Source: Neoechinorhynchus agilis
Lineage: Eukaryota; Animalia; Acanthocephala
Direction of reading: 5' to 3'
Assembly: GCA_051530055.1 (NCBI GenBank)
Contig: CM121341.1
Span: 12,440,784-12,504,783, forward strand
DNA length: 64,000 nucleotides
Shown piece after piece: positions 28,742 through 64,000 of this stretch. Position numbers and translations under genes: made by a program. Numbering within the stretch: position 1 is the first letter of the stretch; each line of letters begins with the position of its first letter. Below the pieces are notes generated by a model, which was not told where the DNA came from, did no database searches, and was given only the letters and a program-made list of their open reading frames with translations.

Positions 28742-30235
28742 TCATTTCACCGGTTGTGTATCTTCTTCGTCAATTTCCTCTGCTACTTTTCGAACTGTTC
28801 CCTTCTTCGTTTGGTTTTCACTTTCATTCGCTTCGCCTATAATCCCTGTCGATTCATTGAGCAGAATCTTATAAGCATCGAGGATGCGATTTGGCTTGGG
28901 ATTTCTAATATTAATTGGAATTCCGTATGAGGCCATCAGTGGTAAGAATGTATCCATGAGGAAAACCTTTACTCGCTTCAGAGCATCGCTACTCAGTTGA
29001 TGTTGACCCTGAAAATCCTGCACAACCCTGTACGCCATTATAAATATTCTTGCCTTAACTTCTGCGAACGATGCGAAACTGAATCTACAATAGAAAAGCT
29101 CTGAGATATCTTACCTTTGATCACACCCCGTTTAAATCTTGAAATGAATTCAATAATCAATGGCAAAATCTCATTGATTTCGCTGTAGCACAGATCATTC
29201 CGTACATCGTCGTGGGTTATGTGCACTACAGAATCTTCTTCACTGGTGATTTCTATAATTTGCGGTTCCGCAGAAGTTGGCACCCTCGGTGATGTGGCTG
29301 CCGGTGGTTCATTATTAGTTGCTATTGTTTCAGTGCTTTTATTAGGGGATCGACGGGGTGATTGTCGCGCAAGGACGGGTTCCGGCCTACATGGGAAATG
29401 GATATAAGCCCACCGCACGACTAGGAGAAACTTACTTAAAATCAGTGTATTCGTGGACGTTTTCAACCTTTTCCTGGTGCTGATTATTAGACTGAAGTTG
29501 TCCGGGCATATATTGAAATTGATTCGGCGAATTTACTGGGTTTTGTTGGTCAATTGGACGCTGGATGCAAAATGCTTCCTGAGGTTGAATAAGCAGTTGA
29601 TTTGAAAGATTAATCACAGCTTCAGTCGTCGATTGATTTAAAGTTGCCGGTTGCTCGCGCTGGGTTTTGGCCATTGTAACGTTATTTTGTTGAGCAAAGT
29701 ATGGATAAGGTAATATATTGTGTTCCGGTCTCGAATGCAAATTTGCGGCATGAAGATTTGTGTTGAATTGTTGATTGCTTCCTTCATGGGGATTATATTG
29801 ATTTTGTTGTTGCTGAAGTGACAACTGACTCGCCAATTGGAATTGATGAACGTATGATGATTGATCTTGATTCCAAGCTGTATTTGGCTGATGAGTAACC
29901 TGTTGTTGTTGAAAATATTGTACTGGAAATGTCGCTGAAATTTGTGCACTTTGTTGTTGAAGTTGATTTGCTGTCAAAATCGACTGTTGATAATGTTGTC
30001 CTTGACATAGTTGATATAGCTCATTCGGCCTCTGTCCAAATGATTGAAAATTAGATACGTTTGAATAAGGCAAATTTTGTAGTTGGCCGGGTTGTTGCTG
30101 TTGCCAGCCGTCTTGCTCCTGCTGCCTTTGATCCAATAATTGACAATTTGAAGGGAAATTAAGGACAGTCCCCGGTGTATATGAGTTATGCAATGTATAT
30201 TGTCCGCCGTCATGGTTAGACTGTCCATTAGAAAT
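28742..30235 (-). pseudogene. Truncated copy of the Gln/Asn-rich gene at 38612-40636
   Basis: Essentially identical to 39040-40520, but lacks the ~535 bp holding the 5' end (40521-41054) and ~350 bp of the last exon (~38689-39039), which creates a premature TGA at 28742. Confidence 0.85.
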
Positions 30236-30633
30236 GATTGTTAGCACGTAGATTTATAAGTCCGTAAATGTTCTGAAATCTACCGAAATAGCTTTGCGAT
30301 AGTATACTTAATTAATGTTATTTTAAAGGAAATGATGTTGATACATCCAATAAAAAAATTTGGCCGTTTTACATCCATCAAAAAATACTGGTGCTTTTAA
30401 AATCAACTTCATTTAAAAATCATGCGGTTCATTACTTGATTTTTTCTGAATAAAATACAACTCTCTGCCGTTCAAAAGAATCATTGTATCTTTCATCTGA
30501 ACATGCGAATTCAAAACCTTCCACAGTGATCGCCACATCGATTAAAATTCAAACATTTACAACGATCTCCAATTTTTGGGTCTCCAATCCGATCTAATAA
30601 TATCCCTGCCTATATCAATCTCCCGGTTTTAAA

Positions 30634-36013: not shown

Positions 36014-37494
36014 TTGAATGTGTGGTTCGTAGCTCTCGCCGACGACTTGAGCGTCGAAATGAGCGAAACTGTCGCCGGAGGCAAGGTACGGACTGTTCAG
36101 GTGGCGCTGACAGCCGTGAGCCCCTTTGGCCCAGCTATTTCAGATAGAAGAGGACTACGAATCGGATCCTTGAATTGTAGGAGTCTGCGAGCGCAATGGC
36201 GTAGGGGAACCGTGACCAAATTGGCAAGGGACGCCAGAATGGATTTTGTGCTTTTACAAGAATTGCGCATAAGAGGCCAGTCAGACACATACGTAAATCA
36301 GGAGGATTTAGGAGGAGACTGGTCATTATGTTACCTATCTGCGGACAGTCGAGGAAATGGAGGTGTAGGCGTTTGCTTATCACCCCGCCTCCGAAACTTC
36401 GCACTATGCAGTACTATAACTGACCGAATCCTTCGTGTCAGCATAAAACTTCGGTCGAGAAATCTCTATGCTTTTGGCGTATATTCACCGACCTCCTCGT
36501 CGGATGAAGTGGCGGTTGAAGGATTTTATGGAAATCTAGCCGAAGCATTAGATGATGTACCGAACAGAGACGCCCTCCTAATAGCCGGTGACTTCAACGC
36601 GATTTTACCGCATTCCGAAAGATCGCTATATGTGTTAAAGGCGAGAATCGGAACAGCCCGTACTTGGTTGAGGCGCTGGAGCGGCATGATCTCGTGCCTG
36701 CTAACACTTTATTCCGGAAGCGTCCGTGGCGTTTTGCGACGTTTATGGGTCAAAAAAATCCGTCCAAACATGCCATGGGAAAAAATCCCAAGAGACACTT
36801 AGCTCAGCTTGACCATATATTGTTGAGACTTAAGGAAAAATGTCGGGTCAATAACGCTGACACATTCACAGTTGATGGGCTGCCAACCGACCACAAGTTG
36901 GTAATGTGTCAGTTGAGCATGAACGACTCGTTGTTCCGTACGCCTCAGCATCCTCCACGCCCGTTCTATGGCGCCCTCGCTAATGAGGAGAAGAGGAAAG
37001 AGGTCGATATCGAACTAGAGAATCAACTGAGCTCGATGCCAGCTGCTGAAACGGATATTGATTTTTATTACAAGTCAATCCGCGACGCAGTGACCGAAGC
37101 GGCCGAGAAAACCCTCCCAAAAATGATGCGTATAAAAGCTGCAAAGGTTATATGGCAGGAGGACTGTGAATTTATAGCAATGGCTGAGCAGATCAAAACT
37201 CTAAGAAAAAGAGGAAAACGATCTGAGACTCGCATTGCAAGTCTTGAACTTGCCAACCTCTATAATAAAAAGCAAGAGGCTTCGATAGAGGATGCAGTTC
37301 GCGGGATCGCATATAAGGAAGGTTTTGTTCGTACCTCCTTAGCATGGAGAGCGATAAACACTCTCACAGGAAGATCCCAAAGACAGCCAACTTTGATTGA
37401 AGGTCCCTCCCCGGAAATCAGAAAAAAGAGAATCGCAAATTATTTTGCGGAAATTCTCAATTCGCCATTATCGTATTTGGATTTATTTATCTAA
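36014..37494 (+). mobile_element. RTE-like LINE ORF2, AP endonuclease and linker, 3'-truncated before RT
   Basis: SLNCRSL, LLQELR, GNGGVG, ITDRIL, GVYSPT, IAGDFNA, LDHIL, TDHKLV. One frameshift ~36660; cut off at the X/Y junction of the duplicated unit. Confidence 0.85.
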
Positions 37495-37524: not shown

Positions 37525-38595
37525 CAGTGGTTCCAAAACTTTTTGTCCTTTTCAGGTGAAAACTTTGACAAGGCCTCCAGGTTGAAAATCCACTAAACGC
37601 ATAAATGAAAACTTTCATTTAAGACAAAATACAAATTTAATGACTTTTATTAACTTTATGGGATATTATAAGATTTTTTTATGTCCATATCAATTACCAG
37701 CAAACCCTAAATGCACACGAGCACCAATATCAGTCGGGTTCTTTTCTTTGTCCCTGAATCAATGATCCACCAGATAGGAAAAGGAGAAAGCAATTAACAA
37801 CTTCTGTACAATAGCGCATAATGCAGGATATTTAATTGGAATCCGTTATTGTACCCAGAATTTCTGGCGTCCTTGTTTAAACACTGGTTTCTGTTCCTCA
37901 TTTGTAGATATTTTGAAAAGCAGCTCTTGGATGAGTACGGATATATCTTTATTTAGGATCTGAGTATGTCACCCAACCAAAAGGTTTCAAACCCCAGTTT
38001 TTAATATCCAAGTCGTTCAGATCTGCATTAAGAGCCGTTAAGTGTTGAGAGTAAGCAAGTAAATCTTCATCTCTATTTCGAAATTTCGAAAGATTTGGAA
38101 ACTGAGAACATTCTCCTTTTGTTAAGTTTTCCTTGTACAGAAAAGGTTTTGCGAAAAACGAAGAAACTGCGCTTTCAGTTCTGATTAAATTTAATTGATT
38201 AACTCGATGTTTAAAATTAGTTTCGTTAAATTTTGCAAATAAATTGGTCACATAGGCCATGTAATTTTTTTGAATTAATTAAATTGTGTCGTAAATAATT
38301 GTATTTGTTTTCTAGGAATTCAACACTTATTTGTGAAATACAAACAAACAGAATTTTTGCCTAAGAGAGATGCTTATATTTTAATAAGGCCCTAAACATA
38401 TCTACCTACAAATTTATTTATTTTGAGTTGTAAATATTAATAAATATTGATCACAATTTTCTCATTTTATATTAAACATAGCACGGACCCTCTGATGTTG
38501 TCCAGGGACTACCAAATCAATTTTAATAATACAAGGAATCCGTGGCAATGCCAGCGAACCCTGGGGGTTCGTACGGACCACTTTGGGAACGACTG
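37525..38595 (-). mobile_element. hAT (Buster/Charlie-like) non-autonomous element, copy 2 (1.07 kb, uninterrupted)
   Basis: Same TIRs, TSD and flanks as copy 1. ORF 37949-38260 (AYVTNLFAKFNETN...SQFPNL...HLTALNADL) resembles the C-terminus of Buster/ZBED8/SCAND3-type transposases. Confidence 0.85.
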
Positions 38596-38611
38596 CATTA
38601 GACTAATTTAT

Positions 38612-40636
38612 TTACCTCAATCGTCTCATAAATCTGGCATCGCTTCGGTGGTCACGAATATGCAATCTACGCTTTTCCATCATTATATTATCAGCTTTTG
38701 AATGTTGCTCATCAGAAGTGCCCATTTTGGCAACTTTACAGTAGATGAACTTCTGACCAACTGGTTCCATTTCAGAAAACTCCGAGTTACTTGTCGATTT
38801 TTTTCGCTTTCTTGACATCTCCACCTCCTCGTTTACTTGCAAGGCCGGTCTTCCTGGCGGTAGCAAATCCTTGACACTCGTATCCGTTTGATTTCCTCTC
38901 TTTCGTTTTGTTCTTGATTCGACGTTTTCCATACGCTCAACAGAATTATTCGAAAGTTCATCTTCAGATCTATAGAGTTCTGGAATAAGCGAGTTTTCAG
39001 TTTCCTTCTTATCTGCAGAAGTGCCAGTTTTCATTCGCTTCACCGGTTGTGTATCTTCTTCGTCAATTTCCTCTGCTACTTTTCGAACTGTTCCCTTCTT
39101 CGTTTGGTTTTCACTTTCATTCGCTTCGCCTATAATCCCTGTCGATTCATTGAGCAGAATCTTATAAGCATCGAGGATGCGATTTGGCTTGGGATTTCTA
39201 ATATTAATTGGAATTCCGTATGAGGCCATCAGTGGTAAGAATGTATCCATGAGGAAAACCTTTACTCGCTTCAGAGCATCGCTACTCAGTTGATGTTGAC
39301 CCTGAAAATCCTGCACAACCCTGTACGCCATTATAAATATTCTTGCCTTAACTTCTGCGAACGATGCGAAACTGAATCTACAATAGAAAAGCTCTGAGAT
39401 ATCTTACCTTTGATCACACCCCGTTTAAATCTTGAAATGAATTCAATAATCAATGGCAAAATCTCATTGATTTCGCTGTAGCACAGATCATTCCGTACAT
39501 CGTCGTGGGTTATGTGCACTACAGAATCTTCTTCACTGGTGATTTCTATAATTTGCGGTTCCGCAGAAGTTGGCACCCTCGGTGATGTGGCTGCCGGTGG
39601 TTCATTATTAGTTGCTATTGTTTCAGTGCTTTTATTAGGGGATCGACGGGGTGATTGTCGCGCAAGGACGGGTTCCGGCCTACATGGGAAATGGATATAA
39701 GCCCACCGCACGACTAGGAGAAACTTACTTAAAATCAGTGTATTCGTGGACGTTTTCAACCTTTTCCTGGTGCTGATTATTAGACTGAAGTTGTCCGGGC
39801 ATATATTGAAATTGATTCGGCGAATTTACTGGGTTTTGTTGGTCAATTGGACGCTGGATGCAAAATGCTTCCTGAGGTTGAATAAGCAGTTGATTTGAAA
39901 GATTAATCACAGCTTCAGTCGTCGATTGATTTAAAGTTGCCGGTTGCTCGCGCTGGGTTTTGGCCATTGTAACGTTATTTTGTTGAGCAAAGTATGGATA
40001 AGGTAATATATTGTGTTCCGGTCTCGAATGCAAATTTGCGGCATGAAGATTTGTGTTGAATTGTTGATTGCTTCCTTCATGGGGATTATATTGATTTTGT
40101 TGTTGCTGAAGTGACAACTGACTCGCCAATTGGAATTGATGAACGTATGATGATTGATCTTGATTCCAAGCTGTATTTGGCTGATGAGTAACCTGTTGTT
40201 GTTGAAAATATTGTACTGGAAATGTCGCTGAAATTTGTGCACTTTGTTGTTGAAGTTGATTTGCTGTCAAAATCGACTGTTGATAATGTTGTCCTTGACA
40301 TAGTTGATATAGCTCATTCGGCCTCTGTCCAAATGATTGAAAATTAGATACGTTTGAATAAGGCAAATTTTGTAGTTGGCCGGGTTGTTGCTGTTGCCAG
40401 CCGTCTTGCTCCTGCTGCCTTTGATCCAATAATTGACAATTTGAAGGGAAATTAAGGACAGTCCCCGGTGTATATGAGTTATGCAATGTATATTGTCCGC
40501 CGTCATGGTTAGACTGTCCATTTGTTGAGACGTTTCCTCTTGTGGAATGATTGGTTTCTTGAAACATATTATGTCCCCAACCTTCCATTGGTTCCTCTAT
40601 TCGTGATTGTCCACCTATTTTCTCCATGCGTTTCAT
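38612..40636 (-). CDS. Gln/Asn-rich low-complexity protein with helical domain and NLS-rich tail (unknown family)
   Basis: Three ORFs join in frame via a 49-nt intron (GTAAGT...TGTAG) and a 53-nt intron (GTAAGA...TCGCAG). Q/N-rich N-half, S/T/P linker, helical core, KRKR and RKRKK motifs. Additional 5' exons (~40660-40860) are possible. Confidence 0.75.
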
Positions 40637-41485
40637 ATTTTAACTTTGTTCCGAACTTTAGTCTGCTTCTTCGCGTATTGTGGTTGCTGTTATTTCTTTA
40701 GAGATGTTATCTAAATGTTTACGGATTAATACCACCAAAACCTGCAAAAAATAAAGTTGATAAGCGAGCTTGTGCTCTGTCCATAAAAGAAATGACGGTT
40801 CATACTTTCTTCGTGTCTTACTCTTGTCATCTTTGAACGAGTTGAAAAGACCTGCTAACATTGACTAATATTGCGTTTATAAACGAACCTACTGTGATTC
40901 ATGTTGATTGCTCGTTTTAAAATGACTCCAATGTATGCGCTTTAACGCTTTTCTTTGATTATATAGCATCGAAAACGATAAGTCGGTTATGCGCCTTTTT
41001 ATGGAGGTCTGCGGGAGCGCCGTGGATTTACACATTTTGAGCTTGAACGAAGAAATGATTGTTAGCACGTAGATTTATAAGTCCGTAAATGTTCTGAAAT
41101 CTACCGAAATAGCTTTGCGATAGTATACTTAATTAATGTTATTTTAAAGGAAATGATGTTGATGCATCCAATAAAAAAATTTGGCCGTTTTACACCCATC
41201 AAAAAATACTGGTGCTTTTAAAATCAACTTCATTTAAAAATCATGCGGTTCATTACTTGATTTTTTCTGAATAAAATAGCTTAAGCGCTGAACGCATTAA
41301 GCATCTTATGCGGTTGTCATCTTTAAATATCTTACGGTCAATAGTTCTAATGTAGAATGTGAAAAGCAATAGCGAATAAGTCTATAAAAATATTGGGACG
41401 CGCCGTCTAAAAGCATCTTTTTTTCTATTGATTATAAAATTCTAAAATCATTGCCATCTACCTCAAAAACTAGCAGCGAGCGTAA

Positions 41486-42327: not shown

Positions 42328-43075
42328 ATGACGCCTAAGCCGATTCTCAAAGTCCTTCCTAGTGATTCTTTAATTATTAGAAGTAGGTTTTTGAGTTTTA
42401 TTTAGCATTTGTAATGATTTTGTGACTTTAAGAGTCATTAAGCAGTGGAGGAAAAGTGGGTGGCATCGTGTATTTGACCAATGAAAATGTTTCAGATATA
42501 GTATTTGAGATTAAGTGTAGTAAAAGAGATTTTCTTTGTGTTAAGCCGTCAAAAGGAATCCTTGGACCAGATAAAACAACCGCCGTGGAAGGTATTTCGA
42601 TGCTTTTAAATTGGAAATAGAATCTCGTTTAATTTTTTTAGTTTATTTCAAGAACCCAGATTATATTAAGGATAAGATTCCACTACTTTGTCTCTGCACA
42701 AAGTTCAAGACTAAAGAAAATACTGTGTGTTACGTTTATAATCTCAGACTATTATTTGCTCTTGTGTCATTGTAGAATCTCAATTCAAACTTTGAGCATA
42801 AGCACGTTATCGCCATAAAACGGGAGGAAGAGAAGCCACTTTGCGAACTTTTCCAAGAAAAGGACGAACTCAAACCCGAATCAGATTTAGAAGCAAAGAA
42901 GCATCCACAAAATGTACAGTCAAATCAAACAACAATGGGAAGCAAAGAAATTTCTCAAAAGGTTGTTAATGAATTGCCGTATGAAAAGAAGGTGTCGATG
43001 TCAGCAATTTGTTTCGGAGTGTCCATTGCTATGGGCATTTTCACAAGTGTAATCAGATTATTATTTGGATTTTGA
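42328..43075 (+). CDS. MSP-domain, C-terminally anchored protein (VAP/MOSPD-like); absent from the ORF track
   Basis: Four exons, three ~50-nt GT-AG introns: MTPKPILKVLPSDSLIIR / ...YLTNENVSDIVFEIKCSKRDFLCVKPSKGILGPDKTTAVE / VYFKNPDY... / charged linker and a terminal TM SAICFGVSIAMGIFTSVIRLLFGF*. Confidence 0.75.
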
Positions 43076-45441: not shown

Positions 45442-46004
45442 AAGCAGTTGTCATAGGTCAAGAACTTCAAACGTAAGGTGAACTCCAAAAAGATTTTTAC
45501 CTAAGGACTTTGACCTTTAACACTTCATGTCAAGAAAATCAGGTAACTAACTACATTTTTGCGAGCGTTTGTGGCCTTTCTAAGCTATTTCAAATGTGTC
45601 CCTTTAATTCTGTGCTCTGCCATACACCCCGGAAACTCATTTTCACCCTGATTTCCACCTCAATTGTTCGTGATTTTAGCCACACACATATTCAAAGCCT
45701 CTAGCCGTAGACTAATGAGCTCAAATGCAGGGTAGTTACTGAAACGTGGGTAGTACGAGTCATTCTATCCCCGTGCTGAACTCATACTCAAATGTGCTCA
45801 CACTTCTTGCATTTCTAGTTTCAAGTAAGGAGCTGTGTGCATTGAGCATCAACACCCAAAAATATTCGTCAAACCCTCTTACTAACTTGCACTTTTACTT
45901 GTTCACTTTGCAAACGCGAAATTCTTTACTCAAGTTTTAAAAGGTTTGTTTCCGTCGATCTAATCCGGCTAAATTACGCCCCCGATATTGTTCTTTAGAT
46001 TAAA

Positions 46005-46292
46005 ATGTCATTCGGTGGACTTGGAGCCTACAGCCCTTTTGGAATGGGCGGTCAAAATTTTAGCTGCACAATGGCGCCTGCTCTTGTAAGCGGAATGGAC
46101 GGTGGATTTTCAGGCGGTGGAATGTTTCCTCCGATGATGGGTGGTGGAATGTTTCCACCGATGATGGGTGGTGGAATGGGCCAAACGTGCTGCGTATGTT
46201 CACCATCGTCTGGAGGGCATGGCGGAATGATGAATCCTTGTTGCAGCCCATCAATGCCCTGCGGTGGACTAAGCTCATACGGTTCTATGTGA
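46005..46292 (+). CDS. Gly/Met/Pro/Cys-rich protein (cluster gene 1; possibly exon 1 of the next ORF)
   Basis: 95-aa ORF with GGGMFPPMM repeats and CC pairs; TTCTTTAG acceptor 6 nt before the ATG. A 28-nt GT-AG intron (46289-46316) would fuse it in frame to 46336. Confidence 0.75.
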   Translation: MSFGGLGAYSPFGMGGQNFSCTMAPALVSGMDGGFSGGGMFPPMMGGGMFPPMMGGGMGQTCCVCSPSSGGHGGMMNPCCSPSMPCGGLSSYGSM

Positions 46293-46335
46293 TTTTCAAT
46301 CTATATCACTTAATAGGAATGAAAATCGCACTCTT

Positions 46336-47139
46336 ATGCCGATGCAATGCCCTCCGATGATGGGCGGCGGATCGATGATGCCAATGCAATGCCCTCCGAT
46401 GATGGGCGGCGGATCGATGATGCCAATGCAATGCCCTCCGATGATGGGTGGCGGATCGATGATGCCGATGCAATACCCTCCGATGATGGGCTACGGATCG
46501 ATGATGCCAAGCCTTCCTATGATGGGTGGCGGATCGATGATGGGCGGCGGATCGATGATGCCAAGCCTTCCGATGATGGGCGGCGGATCGATGATGCCAA
46601 GCCTTCCAATGATGGGTGGCGGATCGATGATGCCAAGCCTTCCAATGATGGGCGGTGGATCGATGATGGGCGGGGGATCAATGATGCCAAGTCAGGTTAT
46701 GCCAATTGCCATCACTCCACCAACGTTAGTTTCCGGACCGTCCATACAACAACCAGTAAGCATGCCCATGCAACAAGTGAGTATGCCAATGCAACAGCCC
46801 GTTCAACAAGTGAGCATGCCCATGCCACAACCTGTTCAACAAGTGAGTATGCCTGTCCAGAATTTTTCTCCTCAGCCAATGCCAATGCCAATACCAACTG
46901 GTCCGCCTAAATACGTTGATGATGATCTGGAGTATCTTTTGATTCAACGCTCAAGCGGTGGTGGATATTCAGGTGGACGAAGGAAGTTATTATATTGTGT
47001 TGAAGGCGATGGACAGACGTCGTACTCAAGACCGCGTCCATCATACCTACCATCCATGGCACTGCCACCGCCGCCACGGCCACCGATGCAACACCATGGA
47101 GATGATGGTGGACAGTTATTTTACTGTGTTCCGCGTTGA
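46336..47139 (+). CDS. Met/Pro/Gly-rich tandem-repeat protein (cluster gene 2)
   Basis: 267-aa ORF with repeats MPMQCPPMMGGGSM, MPSLPMMGGGSM and PMQQV whose nucleotide variation is mostly synonymous; C-terminal L[LF]YCV motif twice. Confidence 0.85.
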   Translation: MPMQCPPMMGGGSMMPMQCPPMMGGGSMMPMQCPPMMGGGSMMPMQYPPMMGYGSMMPSLPMMGGGSMMGGGSMMPSLPMMGGGSMMPSLPMMGGGSMMPSLPMMGGGSMMGGGSMMPSQVMPIAITPPTLVSGPSIQQPVSMPMQQVSMPMQQPVQQVSMPMPQPVQQVSMPVQNFSPQPMPMPIPTGPPKYVDDDLEYLLIQRSSGGGYSGGRRKLLYCVEGDGQTSYSRPRPSYLPSMALPPPPRPPMQHHGDDGGQLFYCVPR

Positions 47140-47303
47140 AGTACTTCAGCAGCAGCAGAGGACGTACTATAAGATTTAAAATCGCCAATTTTGTCTTCGC
47201 TTTTTTTATTCGAAAATGAATTATTTCTAAGAGAATTCTCGTTCGCGTAGGACAATTATCTTCTTACCGCTATCTTCTTATTTTCAGATAGTAAAACAAT
47301 CTG

Positions 47304-47537
47304 ATGGGTAACCGACGGAGCTCTAACCGTGAACCCTCGGTGCAGATGCCAGCCTGCACTTCAAGACAAAACGGTCGAATGGGATCAGGTAGACAACATC
47401 AGATGTGTTACTGCCCTCAGCAGCCAACTATTATACCAATTTTGGTTCCTTCCCCGATGGCGGGTTATTCATATAACAGTCCGAATGCACAGAACCCGTT
47501 TATGAATCAAGGTCCGCCTCCTAGGTACTTCCAGTGA
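47304..47537 (+). CDS. Small Pro-rich protein with N-myristoylation motif (cluster gene 3)
   Basis: MGNRRSS..., QMCYCP, TIIPILVPSP; TTTTCAG acceptor 16 nt upstream. Confidence 0.7.
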   Translation: MGNRRSSNREPSVQMPACTSRQNGRMGSGRQHQMCYCPQQPTIIPILVPSPMAGYSYNSPNAQNPFMNQGPPPRYFQ

Positions 47538-48154
47538 GACTCCTTTCAATCAAACCCAAAATAATCGATATATCTGTGTAAGTAACAGAGAATGCACCAC
47601 GGGACACGGACCAATAATACATTACGCGAGAGCATTTCCATGGGACACTCAAAGTTGTTCCACTCGCGCACACAGTCAAAAATAAAGACCAAATGAATTG
47701 GATATCCATTGAAAAATTTCCTTCATTTCTTCTACTGGAATATTTCACTCAAAACTTGGTTTCTATTTGTGGTTTTTGTGCGTGTGGTGTGAGCGCATTG
47801 TTTATTTAGATTCGCTTTAAAACGAGAACGCATTCTAATGAGCGAGGAAACAGTGAGTATTCCGGGTTTTCGTTGAGACGACCACCACACAAGGTGAGTG
47901 CTGAATGTATGAACTTTTGCGAACATACTGGCATTGAACGGTTCGCGTGTGCGTACACCGGAACTAGTCACGCATGTGACGAAATTCGTTCATATTCTCG
48001 TGGTGCTGACTTTAAAAAGAAGTCATATTCGTTTTGAACCCATACTAAAACAACAGTACCACTTTTTGTTTTACGTTCATATCGATTGTAACCTTTGCTC
48101 TTTCTCAAAGCCAACATTTATCAGCGCTCTTATCCCGTTTAGATATAGAATATA

Positions 48155-48424
48155 ATGGGTCGTATTTTCTCAAAAAATAGAAATCAAGCCCCTGAGTACA
48201 TTCCGTACGCCGTGTGCTGCAATAATGGGTGTGGACAACCTTGCCTCAGTGTTCAGTATATACCAAAGGACCCACCACAACCGACGATCAGCGCCCCGCA
48301 ACCTCTAGTGTTACCGTGTAACACTGGCTGTAACAATGGTTGTGGACAATGCTGTCCACCTTGCTATCCACCCGTCTGTTGTAGACGGTGCCAATGCTCA
48401 GTTCAGCCAGTTCGAACTTGCTAG
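48155..48424 (+). CDS. Small Cys/Pro-rich protein with N-myristoylation motif (cluster gene 4)
   Basis: MGRIFSK..., YIPYAVCC, CNNGCGQ twice, CCPPCYPPVCC; CGTTTAG acceptor 12 nt upstream. Confidence 0.85.
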   Translation: MGRIFSKNRNQAPEYIPYAVCCNNGCGQPCLSVQYIPKDPPQPTISAPQPLVLPCNTGCNNGCGQCCPPCYPPVCCRRCQCSVQPVRTC

Positions 48425-48688
48425 ACAATGAAAATAACTTTAATCAACTAGAAAATAGATTCAGTAGGCAGGAAAGGAGTAAACAAGGATTTCCAGGCTC
48501 GGTTTGGTCATATTACTCTCCTTCTTTATTCGGACAAGGAGAAATGGCGTGACTGTGTTCCTTACGAATGTTTAACCTTGTTATTTAAAAACCCTTTACC
48601 TAGAAATAGATTTTTACATAGATTTTTAAGACTTGTTTCAAAAAGTTCATCCTTTCATTAAAGATATAAACAATCGCAGAAAAGTGAA

Positions 48689-48844
48689 ATGGGCGGTTCC
48701 GGCAGTAAAAACCGTCAACATATCGTCCCGTGCGATTTTGTTTGCAACCGCTGTTGTGGATGTGGCAACCAGTGTGGAGGCGGTGGAGGATGCTACTCCG
48801 TGTGTGGATCTGGTGGATCTGGTGGATTTTCACGATTTGGATAG
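48689..48844 (+). CDS. 51-aa Gly/Cys-rich microprotein with N-myristoylation motif (cluster gene 5; not in ORF track)
   Basis: MGGSGSKNRQHIVPCDFVCNRCCGCGNQCGGGGGCYSVCGSGGSGGFSRFG*; shares HIxPxDFxC with gene 7. Confidence 0.8.
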   Translation: MGGSGSKNRQHIVPCDFVCNRCCGCGNQCGGGGGCYSVCGSGGSGGFSRFG

Positions 48845-49275
48845 ACGAATGTCCTTGCTGATCAAGCAAACCTTGCACACGCTATTGGTAACACCGCAAT
48901 CCCCTTACTGCCGTTCAAAGTAACCTTTCGATAAATGAAAAACAAGATGTGATTCACTCCAACAAATGACACAAACGTTCACATGCCACACTCATTCAGC
49001 AATAAAATTTGAATACATTTTCGACAAGTTTCTGTATGAAAGGTTCTCTCGCCACTATCGTTATTTCCCACTTCTTTTTTCAATTCGCCTATTCCCCAAC
49101 CATCAACACCCGTTTTCAATTCCATCAATTTAGTTTCCACCATGAACAAAAGACCTGCTGACAAAACAAATACACGGTGAGCGTTCACTCTTTGTCACCC
49201 GGTGTCAATTAGCGATCATATATAGGGAGAAAGCAGAAATGAGAATTCAACATTCGAGCACAAGGAACTTCTACC

Positions 49276-49518
49276 ATGGGACTATTCGGAAGTAAAAGGC
49301 AAACCTACGTGGTTCCTCCTGAGTACTGCTGCCCCACTCAGTGTTGCGGATCAGCAACAGCATTACAACCACCTTGTCCACAAGTACCATTTATTCCTCC
49401 TCCTCCACAACAAATCGTACCCATCTATATTCCACAAATCATTCCAGTTCCTCAAGCTCCTATATGCCCTAAACCACAACAACAATTTCCAATCCGTATG
49501 ATATGCTGCCCAACCTAA
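49276..49518 (+). CDS. Small Cys/Pro/Gln-rich protein with N-myristoylation motif (cluster gene 6)
   Basis: MGLFGSK..., YVVPPEYCC, QIVPIYIP, C-terminal CCPT; upstream GTGAGC...TATAG ~50-nt UTR intron candidate. Confidence 0.85.
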   Translation: MGLFGSKRQTYVVPPEYCCPTQCCGSATALQPPCPQVPFIPPPPQQIVPIYIPQIIPVPQAPICPKPQQQFPIRMICCPT

Positions 49519-49684
49519 CAAGAACAGCTACAACTACAACTACAGACGAACTTTTACTAGAATTATTTATATTTGTATTAGGTGCTGCTTTATAGCTAAA
49601 ATAATCTATTAGATGGCCGGGAGGAGTGTACTTGTAACGGATATCTACTCGTCCCATTGCCTTTTAGATATGTAAACAAGACCC

Positions 49685-49888
49685 ATGGGTGGTATATTCG
49701 GAAAAGGAGGTAGTAGAACACATATAATCCCCGCGGACTTCTGTTGTCGCTGCCAATGTAATTGTCAGCGATCATCAGTTTCGCGGGTGTGCCCAACAGC
49801 ATGCTCACGACAAATCTTAATACCAATTGTGATTCCTTATTCACCTTGTTGTGGATGCCCACAATCCGCACTCTGCCATTGCACATAA
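49685..49888 (+). CDS. Small Cys-rich protein with N-myristoylation motif (cluster gene 7)
   Basis: MGGIFGK..., HIIPADFCC, QILIPIVIPY; CCTTTTAG acceptor 17 nt upstream. Confidence 0.85.
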   Translation: MGGIFGKGGSRTHIIPADFCCRCQCNCQRSSVSRVCPTACSRQILIPIVIPYSPCCGCPQSALCHCT

Positions 49889-50157
49889 CTTGTCGATAAA
49901 TTAAAAGATGATGGAACATCAGTAACGTTCGGAAAAGGTGCGTAAATGCACTAAACCCCACTTCGAGTGTGGCATCCAAGGCTCCACATCGCGATCTGAA
50001 GGTACTGAGCACTCCAAGCAAGTTCACGTTGTCTTCAGTAACCAAGACGAAAAAGGTTTACACTTTTTCTAATTAATTGTTTTTTATGAGTAGAAGAGAA
50101 TTATGGCTTGCGTCTTTTGTTCTGTTTTCATTTAAAAAACTTCAACTACGTTTGTAG

Positions 50158-50334
50158 ATGGGATCTAGAGGAAGCCGACCTACTCAATACATTCCTTATC
50201 CATGCAACTGCGGATGTGGCTGTCAATCGCAACCAATATGTGTCCAATGCGATCAACCTCAAGCATCTCCTCAGTATTTCCCAGTCTTCGTACCGCAGGG
50301 CTGCTGTTGCGCTCAATCAAGGTGCTGCTGCTGA
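50158..50334 (+). CDS. 58-aa Cys/Gln/Pro-rich microprotein with N-myristoylation motif (cluster gene 8; not in ORF track)
   Basis: MGSRGSRPTQYIPYPCNCGCGCQSQPICVQCDQPQASPQYFPVFVPQGCCCAQSRCCC*; the ATG directly follows a TTTGTAG acceptor. Confidence 0.85.
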   Translation: MGSRGSRPTQYIPYPCNCGCGCQSQPICVQCDQPQASPQYFPVFVPQGCCCAQSRCCC

Positions 50335-51068
50335 TCTCTTGAAGGAAAAGTGGTATCTATATCCGATTCCCGATGCACTGACAAATGCATAAAAGCACAC
50401 CTCGCACTGAACGTGAATCTCTGAGGCACTGCAACATCCTCTACTCCTCTCACTGATCGAAACAGAACTTATTTTAATTAAATCACGCACTGAATTCAAT
50501 AAACTATCTTTACTTTTAGTTATAATAATTACACGTTTAGTGTTTAACAAATACAAAGAATAGGACCCATTTACCTTTCGGTCGTCATAAGCACTCGAGT
50601 TAAGAGTTGTTCAAAAATATATAAATTCGGATCCGTTTTGGTGGGAATATCCGGTAGGCTTCTAAAGAGTGGGATTTAAATTCATTCTATACATGATTTG
50701 CAATTATACTCATAAAGATTTACAATCCGGGAAAATATAGCTGAAATTGATAATCAAGCCGTTGTTGTGTCAATATTGCAGCGCAATAAACACAAATCAT
50801 GCGGTTATGTTCGTCGCTTTTGGTATGGACGATTTTTGTTTTACTGCCTATGGCTTATGACAAGCAAACGATTAGGTTATGGTGGCGTATTTATATTGTG
50901 AATGAGTGTTACCAAGTATAATCGAGATTTCGATCTTGGGCAGAGGATAAAAGACTCATCGAATTTGTGGACATTTTTCCAACAAAGGAATTGTACTCGG
51001 TGATCTCAAATAACGCACGTATTCTCCAATGGAAAAAAACATTCAATGTATTAAAATCAATATATTAA

Positions 51069-53017
51069 TCAATGCATCGGCGCATAAAGCTGGTGGATAC
51101 AATCGCTTCGCGCATCGGTCACAAATAAAATGTCGCCTGAGATAGCGATTCCAGTTGGCTGGATCATATGAGAGTAGGTGATGTCTTGGACAAATTGGCC
51201 ACTTCTGGTGAACACAGAGACGGACTGCTTGTCCGAATCTACTATATAAAATTTATTATTAGCGAATCGTATGGCCATTGGTGTCTTGATCGGAACTAGG
51301 GGGGAGTCATAGGTGAATACGAGCAAGGGCAGGCCATTATGATCGATTCCCCTTGCAAAAGAACGATCTGCGCCGGATCCATGCATAGTAAAGACAAGCA
51401 TTTGTTGGACGCTGCAAATGAATTGAGGATTTGTGCCAAAAGGAAGGTTGATTTCCTTGAACCACGCCATTGGATTTGTTTTGGCCGATTTTGGATTTAG
51501 TGCGATCCATTTCAGAACTACGATTCGGTCATTCTTTAAGTCGCAGACGTAAATATTATCGTCCGGTCCAACGCACACACCAACAGGAGTATCAAATTGT
51601 TCAGTGTTGGAACCCGAGACGTCGCTTCTTCCTATAAAATACAGCACAGTTTTCTCTTGCATTACCACAACGAGTCTATGGAGATCTGTGATCAAAATTG
51701 CCGATAATCGATCGTTTATGCATACGTCGTTTGGACTATGAAATCCTGTCAATTGCTTAAGTGACTGTTCCGGTTTCCGGGATGTCAAACAAATGTCATG
51801 GTCCGTCTTCGGAATCACTATACTGATCCGATTATTGCCTTGATCGACAACGTACAATTTACCGTGCTTGTCAATATCAATTGATATTGGGCACACGAAT
51901 TCGTCCCCTGGAGATTCTGTACAAAAAGAGTTTGACTATTGCTCGCAAGAAACCAAGCACAAAAGCCAAACCTCCTTTTACTGCGGACGATGGAAGCAAG
52001 AGATCGCCCTGTGTTGCTAGAAGGAGGTTGTTCAATAAAGTGCTTTCCAATGAGACTGTTTTCTAGATTATCGGTTAGATTGTTTGAAAATGTGAATTTT
52101 ATGCGAGGAACCTGCGTGGACACCTCTGTCGTTAGAAAGGGAAGTTCATTGCTGGGATTTTCCAGGTTTTTGGCGATTTCAAGAAGTTCTTCTACACTCA
52201 CAGCACTCTTTTTAACTCCAGAAGATTCGATCTCATTAAGAACACGATTGATAGTTTCGCTAATGGATTCAGTTTTTTTTCGAATATCCCGAACAACTGC
52301 TTCGCTTTCATCCTTGCAATGATTCAAATACAGTTCAAGATTCGAGCTGATCTCTTCAGCACGCTGCTTGACTAAATTCACGTTATCTTCAGCGCGTTCA
52401 ATCACCTGTTGTTTTGCAATAAGTGCGGCATAATCAAACTCACTGAGTTGTTTGTCAATTGTCTGAATTACGCCCTCTGACTGAGTTTTTAAACACCGGC
52501 ATTTCTCGAGAACTCTTTCAAGAAGTTCTTGGCGGTGTTTCTCGATACATCCTGGACAACCGAGATAATTACAGTGTGAACAGATAGTCAGTGAAGGCTC
52601 AAGTCGGCAGATTTGACAGAGATTGTTAGAAGTGAGTTCGATTCGGTTGATTTTTATTAATTGAGCAACTGAAAGGTTCTTCGAGAAATCTTCCACGTTT
52701 TGTGCAACACATTTCATCTTGCAAACAGGACATTTGACATGATAAGTATCCTTAGATGGATCATCGCCGCCATTTCCACACAACGATGAAATAGACGATC
52801 CGGTTAATGGGCGTTTGCTAATATTTATTAGGCACTCAACACAGAAAGTATGGCCACAGGGAAGGATTCGGGGGTCGCAGTATGTTTTGTCGCAAACAGG
52901 GCATGTTATTAGTTGATGAATTGATTTGTAACTACAAACGGATTGATTATGTTGGTCACGGATATCAGACGAAGTAGTAACTTCCATTGGTTCACGTACG
53001 ATCAGCTCACGATTCAT
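51069..53017 (-). CDS. TRIM-NHL protein (RING, B-box-like, coiled coil, NHL propeller)
   Basis: RING CPVC...LPCGHTFCVEC...CPVC, Cys/His-rich B-box-like segment, long helical region, NHL repeats (YVVDQGNNRI, FDTPVGVCV...IYVCDLKNDRI, PTGIAI). One intron near 51915-51980. Confidence 0.92.
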
Positions 53018-54134
53018 TGCTTGACAGGCCGTTGACGGTGATGATATGATCTTGGTAAAACGTTTGTTTTGATCAGGTCACGTTTCCATGACTACCTTGG
53101 CGATTGATTGTTTTAGTGTCTATCGTTTGCCACGTCAATGAAGCTGTTCAAAAGTTAAGGTTCACGCGGGGAAATTACACAGAGAAATACGATTGATCTC
53201 ATATCGTCCAGAGTCCATCAATGGACATCAGTAACAAACCAGTTTTTTCTCGCCAAACCTCTAATTCTTTTTAGTACAAAATATTCCTTAATTGAGAGAC
53301 CCGAGTTCAACGATCCAAACCGACACGAGAAAAGCAATGAAGAAGATATGATTTCTGACTTAATTTTATTTGGCAAAAGTCTAAATACGAACATTTATAA
53401 ACACGCAATACTTTAGAACTGCAATTATACAAACTTTTTAAGATCTTTAAATGCTGTAATGTCAGCAAGATAGCGTGTGTGAATGGAATTGATCAAATGT
53501 ACTCGATCGCAAACGTATCGATTATTAAAATGAAATAGAAGTGTTGGTGATAGCGCATTGTGTTTATTCCCATATCCACGAAACATTATGAACAACTCAC
53601 AATTTGCACTTCTAGAGATGGACAGTAACCTTTAACTTTTTAATAGTCGCGAAACCTAACCTTCAACACTTCATTTTTTGCCTGCAACACCCGTACTCGA
53701 CAAAATCCCATTGTTCATTTGACTTTCACTGACTGGAAATGTGATCGCTTTGCAACGAATAAATACAAGACGCCCTATGCTTTATTAGGAGACAAAAGCA
53801 AATACTCACAAGTGCGTGTGTTCATATGAGTTTGAACGTGAGCCACCAATAATGAATCAGGTTAAAATGACACACGGACACTATTGAATTTCGACAACAG
53901 AGAGCGAGACCGAATATTGACAGCGGTACAAAAATTGGGAACATAGTCATTCTCAGTTTCATATCACACTTGCATGATTTCGACACAGAATATAAACTGA
54001 GAAGAGTTGGCATGGCGGAGAAAGTCAATTTTCACCGCGGCTCCTTCGCTCAATTTACGGCTCCGAGATTGCTCGCATAAAGTAAGTGATGAGCATGTGA
54101 GATTTCAAAGGAATTTTTTCTATAGGAATAAGCA

Positions 54135-54287
54135 ATGGGTTCCATTTGCAGCCGACGAGAGATTACCAGAATAGTGCCATATCCGTGTGAATGCGGAGTT
54201 ATGGCACCAGGTTGTCCAGGCATCCAAATTTATCGAGGACGACGAACAATAGGCGAAGGCACTGGCATCAATAGAATTAGCGGATGA
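54135..54287 (+). CDS. 50-aa microprotein with myristoylation plus adjacent Cys (cluster gene 9; not in ORF track)
   Basis: MGSICSRREITRIVPYPCECGVMAPGCPGIQIYRGRRTIGEGTGINRISG*; 45-nt GTAAGT...CTATAG UTR intron just upstream. Confidence 0.75.
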   Translation: MGSICSRREITRIVPYPCECGVMAPGCPGIQIYRGRRTIGEGTGINRISG

Positions 54288-54397
54288 CAAATTGACTTGA
54301 TCGTTACGTGAATGAAATCCTAATTATTTTGTTTTTCGATTATTCTTTACCATTCGAGTGCTCAGATTAATCCAACGATTTTCAGATATAATTATAA

Positions 54398-54592
54398 ATG
54401 AGCCGCTGCTGTCGTCGGAAACGTATAACAACAATATATGTGCCCTACAGTTGCGGTAAACATTGTGAACCGCAATGTGCTCCACAATATGCTCCACCGC
54501 CTTTCCAACATCCAGCACCTCCACCGCTCCCGTATTGTCCCATTTTTATTCCACCACCACCACCCATCTTTTCACCGTTCGTTAGGCGTTAA
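54398..54592 (+). CDS. Small Cys/Pro-rich protein with N-terminal CC plus basic motif (cluster gene 10)
   Basis: MSRCCRRKR..., IYVPYSC, CPIFIPPPPP; TTTTCAG acceptor 12 nt upstream. Confidence 0.8.
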   Translation: MSRCCRRKRITTIYVPYSCGKHCEPQCAPQYAPPPFQHPAPPPLPYCPIFIPPPPPIFSPFVRR

Positions 54593-61950: not shown

Positions 61951-62089
61951 TAAACGAGGGATATTCACAGACTGCAATATTCTCGAGCTCTCCACGACGC
62001 CTCAACGTAGTTGTCGTTGCCAAATCGAAATGTGTCCTTTCCAAATCATATCGACTGGTAAAATTGTATTAAAAATCGAATATTGAATT

Positions 62090-62350
62090 TTGGACGGTAT
62101 AATCCTTAAGAACGAAGACCAGGAGCGAATCGATAACGATGTAACTGAGCAGCAAACTGAATTCGAGAAGCGGGCATTTCAAGAAGGCCAAGAAGTATGG
62201 TTTAAAAGGGAACTGAATAGCAAATGGAGGAGGGGGAAGTAATGAAACACACGAACCGCTGTGTTACATCGTAAAGGACGAGGATGGGAGATGCAAAAGA
62301 GCTCGCGGAAATTTAATGCGAGAGCGAGGAGAAAATCAGACTAACGAAAG
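62090..62350 (+). mobile_element. Gypsy integrase C-terminal remnant
   Basis: RAFQEGQEVWFK...KWRRG followed by a decayed Y.V...G...R.R..L pattern. Confidence 0.45.
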
Positions 62351-62429
62351 GGCTGCAATGCCAAGCGAGGAGGAAAATCGTCTTCTCGGTAACGCTTCAT
62401 CGCTGTGTCAAAGCTTCATCGCTGTTTAG

Positions 62430-64000
62430 CGTTCCGAACTCACATATCAGACGAACTCCCAAATCAGACGAACTCACATATTTAAAAGCTTACAAACAAA
62501 AAACTTGCGAAACAATTCCGCTCCACAACAGCCACCAAATCGTTCGTATCGGTCAACTCCTTGTCCCCACGATCAACGTCGTCACACGATCTAACGTCGT
62601 AAACACTTGCAAACAATGCCGAGGCCAAAGCGCCCAACCACCAAGCTCGTTCCCTGCGACATGGACGATTGCCCTGTTACAACTCAAATATACGTCTCAG
62701 TTACTTGGGCAGCAGCCGGAAATTAATCTGCGGTTTCCGTGCAGCCGCCTTGCTCAAACCTTGTTCTCCGGTTTCCCCCTTCCCACTAAGTACTCTAACC
62801 CTAACCGCTCCCAAACCCCCAAATCCCAACCCCTTCCATCTTCAGTTTCCTCACCCCAAACCACCTCTTCTCCCTCGCTTCACTCTCCAAATCCTTTCCA
62901 CCCACCCTTTGCTGTCTCCGCCCTCCAAAACTCCTCTCCACACTCTAATTCGACTTTTCATCAACAGCCTTCTCCCCTAATTAATTCCGTTCCTATCGTC
63001 TCTCACACCCTTTTCCCTCGTCCCTGCACTCTAAGTCTCACTCTGCTCCACCATTAAAACCGAACCCCCCTTCCTCCTCGGCCTCATCTAAATCCTCCAC
63101 CTCCTCTCTAGCACCCCGTACTGCAAGAAAAAACCATAAACTCCTTCCGTCCACCCACGAATCCCGAACTACCCCATCGGTCAACTTCCATCCCTTCTCT
63201 CTCTGCGCAGCTTCAACCCTCTCCGTCAGTGTCCACCCTTCATGTCCCTTCTAAACATCCCTTTCCAATAATCTTTTATTCTAACATCCACAGCCTCCTC
63301 CCCAAACTGGATGAGCTCCATATAGTGGCCTCTTCTTGCAACGCCGACATCCTTGTAATTACAGAAACATGGCTCTCACCCCATAGTAAATTATCTGTCT
63401 ACCTTCCAAACTTTCAAGCTTTTCACCTCACAAGGAACTTCCGAAACGGGGGAAGCATATCGATCTTCATCCGCGCCTCTTTCCCTTACCATTGCTCTTC
63501 ACCCTACCTTTTCATCTCCGACGATCTTGAATCGCTACCCATCCAACTTCATCGCCCAATCTGCAATGGCCAACGTGAGATCTCTATCGCTGGCCATTAT
63601 CGCCCTCCTTCCTTCTTCAACAAATGGACCACCTATTTACTGGCCTACTTTCCACTACCACAGATCACTTCATCATATTGGGCGATTTTAACAAACTGCC
63701 GATTCCGCCCTAGCTCTCTCATCTTTCCCAACTCGTTACTTTCCCCGCACGCTGCTCCTCCCGCCTTGATAAAATTTTCTCAAACATCAGGCAATACTCG
63801 TGCACTACCAAACTCCCCCCGATCGCCTCGTCTGACCATTGTTCCATCCTTCTCTCCCCCTCATCACCTCAAAAACGTTCCTTTCCCGACCTCTGCGTTG
63901 TCTGGGATAAACGTGATCATCATACCCAATCTTTTGCTGTATGTGTCAATTCTCTTATCACGCAAAATCGCTCTACCATCTTTGGCACCGGCCCCCCGAT
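62430..64000 (+). mobile_element. L2/CR1-like LINE 5' portion (S/P-rich ORF1 and AP endonuclease), running off the window
   Basis: YSNIHSLLPKLDEL, DILVITETWL, NGGSISIFIR, GHYRPP, GDF; C/T-rich sense strand; frameshifted. Confidence 0.8.

Follow-up and report, generated by a model that had tools for sequence, protein, structure and literature searches.

A tandem array of small proteins with candidate N-terminal acylation motifs and Cys/Pro-rich bodies in the acanthocephalan Neoechinorhynchus agilis

Eight short open reading frames (ORFs) of 50-89 amino acids (aa) lie on the + strand at 47.3-50.3 kb and 54.1-54.6 kb of a 64-kb stretch of contig CM121341.1, assembly GCA_051530055.1 (the window, whose numbering is used throughout) from Neoechinorhynchus agilis, an eoacanthocephalan parasite of fish. 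We hold with high confidence that these ORFs are a real protein-coding family and, judging from their sequences, they appear to form a tandem array of eight single-coding-exon microprotein genes that evolves by birth and death. The genome of this worm is very compact (46.2 Mb, three major contigs), and its annotation was produced by BRAKER with RNA-seq hints (PMC12690905). An earlier interpretation of the same DNA, made from the letters alone (the sequence-only reading), had listed ten ORFs in this region, and all of them are present on the + strand at their claimed coordinates. The eight same-strand genes that it counted within 4.3 kb therefore exist as ORFs, but the first two of them encode a different kind of protein and are described separately below. 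The members of the family, and the remnant of one of them, are the following:

47304-47537, + strand: g47304, 77 aa, starts MGNRRSS, with the strand IIPILVP and only 3 Cys; a divergent member, unannotated
48155-48424, + strand: g48155, 89 aa, starts MGRIFSK, with YIPY, two CNNGCGQ blocks, QPLVLP and a CCPPCYPPVCCRRCQC tail
48689-48844, + strand: g48689, 51 aa, starts MGGSGSK, with HIVP, a Cys block and then a Gly-rich tail; a truncated copy, absent from GenBank
48846-48941, + strand: out-of-frame remnant of g48689, comprising the ancestral C-terminal half, which ends in ...PQSPYCRSK and a stop (48846-48923), and the 3' end
49276-49518, + strand: g49276, 80 aa, starts MGLFGSK, with YVVP, CCPTQCC and IVPIYIP
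49685-49888, + strand: g49685, 67 aa, starts MGGIFGK, with HIIP, CCRCQCNC, LIPIVIP and a CCGC...CHC tail; unannotated
50158-50334, + strand: g50158, 58 aa, 21% Cys, starts MGSRGSR, with YIPY, CNCGCGC, YFPVFVP and a CCC...CCC tail
54135-54287, + strand: g54135, 50 aa, starts MGSICSR, with RIVPYPCEC and a degenerate second half; unannotated
54398-54592, + strand: g54398, 64 aa, starts MSRCCRRKR (no Gly2; CC followed by basic residues), with YVPY, a Pro-rich body and CPIFIP; unannotated

In a MAFFT alignment, all full-length members show one and the same succession of modules: MGxxxS(K/R), a short polar/basic linker, [Y/H/R][I/V]xP, a first Cys block, a Pro/Gln linker, P-phi-phi-phi-P, and a second Cys block. 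The clustering of such ORFs goes far beyond what chance would produce. Seven ORFs of at least 45 aa that start MG...[SG][KRS] are found in the window, all of them on the + strand and within 7 kb (47.3-54.3 kb), whereas 200 Markov-1 simulations of the window yielded 0.17 such ORFs on average and never more than 2. For the fuller family pattern, which includes [Y/H/R][I/V]xP, the corresponding figures are 7 ORFs versus 0 in every simulation. The motif P[ILVF][ILVFY][ILV]P occurs 11 times in the six-frame translation of the 64 kb, and 6 of these 11 occurrences are in frame within family ORFs. The N-termini quoted by the sequence-only reading proved to be exact (seven MG starts, six of them with Ser6, and an eighth that reads MSRCCRRKR), as did its seven early motifs (YIPY, HIVP, YVVP, HIIP, YIPY, RIVP, and YVPY) and its five P-x-x-x-P strands, to which we add a sixth, QPLVLP in g48155. 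The accompanying statement that all products are rich in CC/CxC and Pro was too strong for three of the members: g47304 has 3 Cys (4%) and no CC, g54135 has 4 Cys and no CC, and g48689 has a single Pro. That the genes are paralogous is borne out by the collinear modules, by motifs kept despite saturated DNA, and by the use of both TCA and AGY codons for Ser6.

At the nucleotide level the gene units have drifted far apart. A blastn comparison with 7-nt words found no similarity between them except in the 48-nt 3' ends of g48689 and g49685; the codons for IPILVP in g47304 can be matched to the equivalent codons of g49685 with 89% identity over 19 nt. One copy has TCA for Ser6 and five have AGC or AGT; Gly2 is encoded by GGT, GGC or GGA, and the two prolines of the strand motif make use of all four CCN codons. 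The motifs thus persist while the DNA between copies is saturated, so that constraint must act on the protein, which is our strongest argument that the ORFs are genes. Pooled over the family copies, the proportion of synonymous differences (pS) is 0.81, and hence saturated, versus 0.50 for nonsynonymous differences (pN), a comparison that lends weak support to this argument because the alignment was protein-guided and therefore biased towards pN < pS.

The array also carries traces of turnover. Genes g48689 and g49685 are collinear across the whole unit, and a Gly-codon-rich insertion in g48689 shifts the frame so that a stop follows after 51 codons. What was once its C-terminal half can still be made out further downstream in a different frame, followed by a GATAAAT(G/T)AAAA 3' end shared with g49685, and the remnant is collinear with the C-terminus and the GATAAATTAAAA 3' end of g49685 (73% identity over 48 nt). 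Gene g54135 is devoid of both the P-phi-phi-phi-P strand and the C-terminal Cys block, and the CNNGCGQ block is internally duplicated in g48155. By sequence, g48689 and g54135 both look decayed, the latter possibly so. The truncated g48689 with its remnant, the losses in g54135 and the internal duplication in g48155 together suggest that the array is old, diverged and turning over.

Seven of the nine genes of the cluster (the eight family members and the neighbouring repeat gene described below) carry a pyrimidine-rich YAG/R (the slash marks the putative junction) 0-25 nt upstream of the ATG, and four of these sites read TTYAG/ATA:

47283-47290, + strand: acceptor-like TTCAG/ATA, 16 nt upstream of the g47304 ATG
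45997-45998, 48141-48142, 49666-49667, 50156-50157, 54124-54125 and 54384-54385, + strand: equivalent acceptor-like AGs

Among all ATG ORFs of the window, the background frequency of YAG/R is 9% (21/235), and hand arithmetic puts the binomial probability of the enrichment at about 1e-6, for a pattern that was defined after looking at the data. The bare 8-mer TTYAG/ATA is not enriched window-wide (11 occurrences versus 7.8 expected), and it is the position relative to the ATGs that stands out. Alignment of the upstream regions brought out no long shared promoter block, only the short TTYAG/ATA; a TATA-like ATATATAG lies about 55 nt upstream of g49276. The YAG/R sites resemble 3' splice sites and would therefore fit either a 5' untranslated region (5'-UTR) intron that ends just before the ATG, or trans-splicing. 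Spliced-leader (SL) trans-splicing has been reported in bdelloid rotifers and not in a monogonont (PMC1925144), and we found no report of it from acanthocephalans in the literature. At the other end of the units, AATAAA or ATTAAA occurs 12-235 nt after most cluster genes. A poly(A) signal is missing between the gene at 46005 and g47304 (164 nt apart), between g49276 and g49685 (166 nt), and between g54135 and g54398 (110 nt), so that these three close pairs may be co-transcribed.

A 20-nt element, AAGAGAATT(C/A)T(C/G)G(T/C)T(C/T)GCGT, is found at 47229-47248 and 50094-50113, approximately 60-75 nt upstream of g47304 and g50158. The two copies are 80% identical, and the copy at 50094-50113 starts directly after the acceptor AG used by the 172-aa GenBank model discussed next. 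Possibly it is a regulatory element or part of a 5'-UTR that the two genes have in common.

Three GenBank models fall within the cluster, and five of the eight family members (g47304, g48689, g49685, g54135, and g54398) are not annotated as such. KAL7676650.1 (80 aa) corresponds to g48155 minus codons 3-11, which are cut out as a 27-nt intron that encodes RIFSKNRNQ and ends AAATCAAG. We judge this intron to be an artefact, since it is in frame, has no stop, encodes a segment conserved in the paralogues (LFGSK, IFGK), and lacks a pyrimidine tract before its acceptor. KAL7676651.1 (172 aa; 49276-50392) combines most of g49276 with a stretch that crosses g50158 out of frame, and leaves out g49685, which lies within an intron of that model. 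As all three family motifs are present in the family frame of g50158, this frame is at least the ancestral coding one. On these grounds, two of the three GenBank models are probably mis-structured. The TRIM-NHL gene that interrupts the cluster was used as a yardstick for annotated introns of 27 or 28 nt, with an ambiguous outcome, as five intron solutions fit. Ten alternative-frame and antisense ORFs of the region gave no significant Pfam match.

Database searches did not connect the family to any described one. None of the ten ORFs had a Pfam match at E up to 1, a profile search of the PDB returned nothing at E up to 10, and none of the exact ten products is present in a collection of 15 billion proteins. 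A word-indexed search of 5.8 billion clusters with g48155 and the family profile recovered only the window's own 80-aa model. When the profile was run with full HMMER against 1.84 billion representatives, nothing came back but the window's own 172-aa model and a spurious protein derived from repeats. Even the annotated member of the family receives just 29 bits from the family profile (E = 0.38), and ORFs of this size are seldom annotated, so that real relatives elsewhere would fall below threshold. The absence of homology to described families, as proposed by the sequence-only reading, therefore holds for Pfam, the PDB and the two large protein libraries, with "undescribed" limited to the reach of insensitive searches. 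Within that reach, the family appears to be lineage-restricted and without known relatives. Our literature search found neither a described family of acylated Cys-rich microproteins nor a proteome of a lamina or lorica. Three other kinds of small protein were considered and ruled out. Secreted Cys-rich peptides of the knottin or defensin type do not fit, as there is no signal peptide, no conserved Cys framework, no confident fold and no PDB relative; tail-anchored CYSTM proteins do not fit for want of a C-terminal hydrophobic transmembrane segment and of a Pfam match; and protamine-like proteins do not fit a composition that is only moderately basic and dominated by Pro and Gln.

The predicted products are basic, with a net charge between +2 and +7, and Asp and Glu are nearly absent from them. 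Their content of Cys is 4-21%, that of Pro reaches 28% and that of Gln 16%; in g48155, g48689, g49685, and g50158, Cys makes up 16-21% of the residues, with up to five CxC. No signal peptide was found in family members, in agreement with the sequence-only reading, and the N-terminal 20 residues are polar or basic. There is likewise no transmembrane segment by hydropathy, the maximum Kyte-Doolittle mean over 15 residues being 0.69-1.75 in a stretch that is broken by Pro. AlphaFold2, run with the family alignment, gave a mean predicted local distance difference test score (pLDDT) of 44.8 and no secondary structure.

The conserved N-terminus makes a credible acylation motif. Gly2 is present in seven of the eight members, the exception being g54398, which starts MS. 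PROSITE pattern PS00008 (G-{EDRKHPFYW}-x(2)-[STAGCN]-{P}) is matched by six of the seven Gly2 members, so that the N-myristoyltransferase consensus proposed earlier applies to all of them but g48155. Lys or Arg occupies position 7, where it is favourable for N-myristoylation, in six of the seven. Cys5 in the MGSICS start of g54135 is placed as in Src-family dual-acylation motifs, and the MSRCCRRKR start of g54398 resembles the palmitoylation motif of GAP-43. The latter likeness concerns a pair of Cys close to the N-terminus with basic residues after it; the IQ motif and the rest of GAP-43 are absent, so that this is a resemblance of motifs and not membership. From these N-termini we consider it probable, with some reserve, that most members are N-myristoylated. 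Elsewhere in the window, a short ORF at 20457 (+ strand) starts MGYCFSKKSR, a textbook myristoylation-plus-palmitoylation N-terminus. This ORF, which is not related to the family, stops after about 28 codons and possibly represents exon 1 of a gene not yet recognised.

Directly upstream of the family lies the gene that accounts for the first two ORFs of the region:

46005-47139, + strand: gene for a Met/Gly/Pro-rich repeat protein, made up of the ORFs 46005-46292 (95 aa) and 46336-47139 (267 aa), which have PPMMGGG-type repeats in common

GenBank joins the two ORFs via a 28-nt intron into a 368-aa product. The gene contains tandem coding repeats of 27, 42, 36, and 33 nt, with the repeat units PPMMGGG(M/S), MPMQCPPMMGGGSM, MPSLPMMGGGSM, and QQ(P)VSMPM. 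Its composition is 16-20% Met, 11-19% Pro and 15-27% Gly, and there are two CC pairs. Neither ORF has a Pfam match, and a word-indexed homology search found no relative of the non-repetitive C-terminus. The product has neither an MG start nor the family motifs, and shares with the family a sulfur-rich, low-complexity and signal-less character. By sequence it is thus not a member of the MG family. If the family is structural, this protein could be a loosely loricrin-like matrix partner; if the family binds metal, it could be a protein with thioether ligands.

Two further genes of the window bear on the discussion below:

51069-53017, opposite strand to the family: TRIM-NHL gene, which splits the cluster into two parts
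42328-43075: MSP-domain gene with a hydrophobic C-terminal tail, VAP-like

Apart from the cluster, the window has the look of ordinary eukaryotic DNA. Besides the two genes just listed, it contains genes for a calpain, a beta-ketoacyl synthase, a tRNA-splicing endonuclease and a PKA regulatory subunit, as well as a Ty3/gypsy-type retroelement and an endonuclease of the long interspersed nuclear element (LINE) type. Scans of the whole window for tRNA genes and against Rfam found none of either. A satellite array with a 126-nt unit (43.5 copies, 96% identity) occupies 1-5363 and continues past the left edge; spurious repetitive ORFs, for example at 2992-3411, are its by-product. The Ty3/gypsy-type element has long terminal repeats (LTR type) and lies at 24947-28163 on the - strand, with gag-like, aspartyl protease, reverse transcriptase/RNase H and integrase ORFs that are largely open, and the LINE-type endonuclease ORF is at 36014-36802. 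A segmental duplication (28430-30457 and 38321-41278, 91-99% identity, about 10.3 kb apart) bears a Gln-rich gene, and each copy contains one and the same 142-aa ORF (29038-29466 and 39331-39759). Other pairs of repeats, at 22.4-24.4 kb and 37.5-41.9 kb, suggest that transposable elements brought about duplication or nesting, or that the assembly is at fault. The peptide string LPGKLFPLIIPIVSLEK is encoded identically at about 8542 (- strand) and about 13322 (+ strand), some 4.8 kb apart, and its presence on opposite strands indicates an inverted duplication. The right end (62001-64000) departs from the rest of the window in its higher GC content (0.48) and its strongly negative GC skew (-0.38); a 17-nt microsatellite-like repeat is found at 62435-62481.

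What the family may do has to be read from composition and motifs. The single most likely reading, which we put forward tentatively, is that it serves to form a cross-linked, membrane-apposed structural layer. After removal of Met1, Gly2 would be myristoylated co-translationally by N-myristoyltransferase, and binding to the cytoplasmic leaflet would be stabilised by Lys/Arg7 and nearby basic residues and/or by palmitoylation of nearby Cys (MGSICS; MSRCC). Judging from composition, the products could pack laterally via their Ile/Val-Pro strands, and the Cys/Pro/Gln-rich body, which is similar in composition to KRTAP, SPRR, and LCE proteins, would pack and become cross-linked into a dense sub-membrane layer, likely by disulfides and possibly also by Gln-Lys isopeptides. 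The most fitting target would be a sulfur-rich intracellular hard structure of the syncytial tegument, either the intracytoplasmic lamina or the hooks and spines; the shell-forming syncytium of the embryo would be a less likely one. Acanthocephalan hooks are sulfur-rich by energy-dispersive X-ray analysis, which was attributed to cystine in unidentified polymerised proteins (PMC12651140), and the syndermatan syncytial epidermis has an electron-dense intracytoplasmic lamina directly beneath the apical membrane (PMC13403294). Moreover, among the tRNA genes of Pomphorhynchus laevis those for Cys are the most numerous (57 on one contig), with those for Gln and Gly next (PMC7310846). The same three residues are among the most enriched in the family, and the excess in P. 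laevis could reflect a demand for Cys/Gln/Gly-rich proteins, or just tRNA-derived repeats. These points from the literature make a tegument-associated structural role the most likely one. Taken as a whole, a lineage-restricted array of acylated microproteins with a structural role in the tegument is the best explanation that we can offer, plausible if still short of probable. The narrower proposal that the microproteins, perhaps together with the Met/Gly/Pro repeat protein, build the intracytoplasmic lamina or the sulfur-rich hook cortex, with myristate and palmitate as their anchors in the inner leaflet of the apical membrane and with cross-linking thereafter, would have to be called a long shot.

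Several observations weigh against a cross-linked structural layer, in addition to the limits already given for the pN/pS comparison and for the acceptor-like sites. Not all members fit the architecture, as g48689 and g54135 have lost its second half and g47304 has only 3 Cys. Gene g48155 fails PS00008 solely through Arg3, although Lys3 occurs in myristoylated neuronal calcium sensors despite the exclusion of a basic residue at this position by the pattern. The cytosol of a living syncytium is reducing, so that disulfide cross-linking is not a given, and the CC/CxC strings could equally bind metal or be palmitoylated. Finally, rotifer homologues, which would be expected if the target were the syndermatan lamina, were not found by HMMER among the 1.84 billion representatives with a profile that is insensitive.

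One alternative is that the ORFs are not separately translated and are either decaying pseudogenes or parts of larger spliced genes, as in the 80-aa and 172-aa models of GenBank. Those models were produced with RNA-seq hints (PMC12690905), five of the eight small ORFs are unannotated as such, g48689 and g54135 look degenerate, and the exact products are missing from the collection of 15 billion proteins. Against this stand the in-frame, stop-free "intron" of the 80-aa model, which encodes residues conserved among paralogues (IFSK...), the three motifs in the family frame of g50158, which cannot be attributed to chance, the want of Pfam matches in alternative frames, and the persistence of the motifs at saturated synonymous sites. 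We consider this alternative very unlikely. If the proteins are made, their Cys might serve as metal ligands. The products would then be membrane-tethered, metallothionein-like binders of soft metals whose CC/CxC chelate Zn, Cu, Cd, and Pb, and the neighbouring repeat protein, with its MxM and MM motifs, would bind Cu(I)-type ions, so that both would contribute to the metal hyper-accumulation of acanthocephalans. Free thiol clusters in a reducing cytosol typically bind metal, and four small cytosolic products with 16-21% Cys next to a gene product with 16-20% Met would suit such a role. Metal accumulation is on record for acanthocephalans, for which a convincing metallothionein is yet to be defined (PMC12274423; PMC12690905). 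Yet no metallothionein model of Pfam was matched at E up to 1, the Tyr/Phe and the long Pro/Gln/Ile-rich stretches are untypical of metallothioneins, and g47304 and g54135 are Cys-poor. The conserved modules, moreover, are non-Cys motifs (MGxxxSK, YIPY, P-phi-phi-phi-P), while the Cys positions are poorly conserved. We also know of no lipid-anchored metallothionein, and on balance regard metal binding as unlikely.

Two other alternatives accept the proteins but assign them a different place. The family could consist of N-myristoylated and multiply S-palmitoylated organisers or regulators of membrane microdomains, with CC/CxC strings palmitoylated as in cysteine-string protein, that act like apicomplexan ISPs, Leishmania SMP-1/HASPB or adaptors of the GAP-43/BASP1 type and form no cross-linked shell. 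The products are basic, disordered and foldless, CC strings in a reducing cytosol are natural substrates for palmitoylation, and MGxxxS(K/R), MGSICS, and MSRCCRRKR resemble known dual-acylation motifs. Most of the Cys, though, are far from the N-terminus, in Pro/Gln-rich sequence of KRTAP/SPRR-like composition; eight diverged tandem copies with decaying members better suit a bulk structural or fast-evolving role; and there is no homology to any named adaptor, which leaves this alternative improbable in our view. A structural role outside the tegument would be offered by the germ line and the reproductive tract, with the products as sperm membrane or sheath proteins, shell precursors of the embryonic syncytium or cement gland material that would evolve fast under sexual selection. 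Orphan, fast-evolving, small tandem genes are typical of reproductive tissues, the birth-and-death turnover with truncated copies would agree with this, and the composition resembles that of the Cys/Pro-rich sperm proteins SMCP and Drosophila Mst84D/87F. Of the transcripts of N. agilis, 30% are sex-biased, and its body is dominated by reproduction (PMC12690905). No neighbouring gene is germline-specific, however, the MSP-domain gene being VAP-like with its C-terminal hydrophobic tail, and shell or cement material normally needs a secretory signal, which is not present. We see a reproductive function, too, as having a small chance of being correct.

Set beside known systems, the family belongs to none of them by the membership tests that we ran. 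It would work most like the amniote SEDC (LCE, SPRR, loricrin) and KRTAP clusters, with the difference of a lipid-anchor motif and of acting, if at all, inside a living syncytium. Those clusters, too, are tandem arrays of small paralogous genes with Cys/Pro/Gln(/Gly)-rich, basic, disordered and signal-less products; CCxP-type strings are shared as well, and the resemblance of the products is one of composition only. The likeness to loricrin concerns the Gly/Ser-rich tail of g48689 and the neighbouring gene. Amniote SEDC genes have a non-coding exon 1 and the whole coding sequence in exon 2, a layout that the uninterrupted ORFs and the acceptor-like sites 0-25 nt upstream of seven of nine ATGs could possibly share. 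SEDC and KRTAP products become cross-linked where they are deposited, either beneath the plasma membrane on its cytoplasmic side or within a matrix inside the cell. Unlike the present family, they are amniote- or mammal-restricted, are not N-myristoylated, lack YIPY and P-phi-phi-phi-P, and are fixed by transglutaminase or disulfides in dying cells, whereas the N. agilis proteins would sit in a living syncytium; neither Pfam nor the 1.84 billion representatives revealed homology.

The remaining comparisons are partial. Metallothioneins are likewise small and cytosolic, with CC/CxC clusters and no stable fold without ligand, but Cys makes up about 20-30% of their residues, in conserved CxC/CC arrays, and aromatic residues are few or absent. 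The family differs from them in its 4-21% Cys, unconserved Cys columns, Tyr/Phe within conserved motifs, Pro/Gln/Ile-rich segments and acylation-type N-terminus, and in having no Pfam metallothionein match. Apicomplexan ISP1-4, Leishmania SMP-1/HASPB and vertebrate BASP1/GAP-43 are similar at the N-terminus only (MG...S/K, or CC plus basic residues). Such small dually acylated proteins are targeted to the cytoplasmic leaflet, as the family would be, but have no Cys/Pro-rich body and no such tandem array; ISPs and SMP-1 have folded domains, in contrast to the absence of a predicted fold here, and homology was not found. SMCP and Drosophila Mst84D/Mst87F are small, Cys/Pro(/Gly)-rich products of clustered genes and form disulfide-cross-linked intracellular structures, but they lack an acylation motif, and no homology to the family was found. 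Cysteine-string protein has comparable CC/CxC runs that are open to multiple palmitoylation on a cytosolic protein; it is, however, a DnaJ-domain chaperone with a single string, whereas the family has no J domain and its Cys are dispersed among Pro and Gln.

Five of the eight genes are absent from the public annotation and two of its models appear to be mis-structured, so that studies of N. agilis built on the predicted proteome cannot currently see this family. If its members are made and acylated, they would constitute an undescribed family that joins an N-myristoyl/palmitoyl anchor with a Cys/Pro/Gln-rich body of the cross-linking type, a combination not known so far. Bodies of this kind serve cross-linking in hair, in the cornified envelope and in the sperm capsule. 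In acanthocephalans the hooks are sulfur-rich, the egg shell is keratin-like and the syncytial skin contains a dense lamina, and to our knowledge no structural protein of hooks, egg shell or lamina has been identified. The cluster is a concrete candidate for such a protein or, alternatively, for the metal-binding proteins still missing from a group that is well known to accumulate metals. If the proposed role in lamina or hooks is true, the family would for the first time give molecular access to the structure by which Syndermata are defined, and it would represent a "cornified envelope" that was built convergently in a living syncytium from lipid-anchored KRTAP/SPRR-like peptides.

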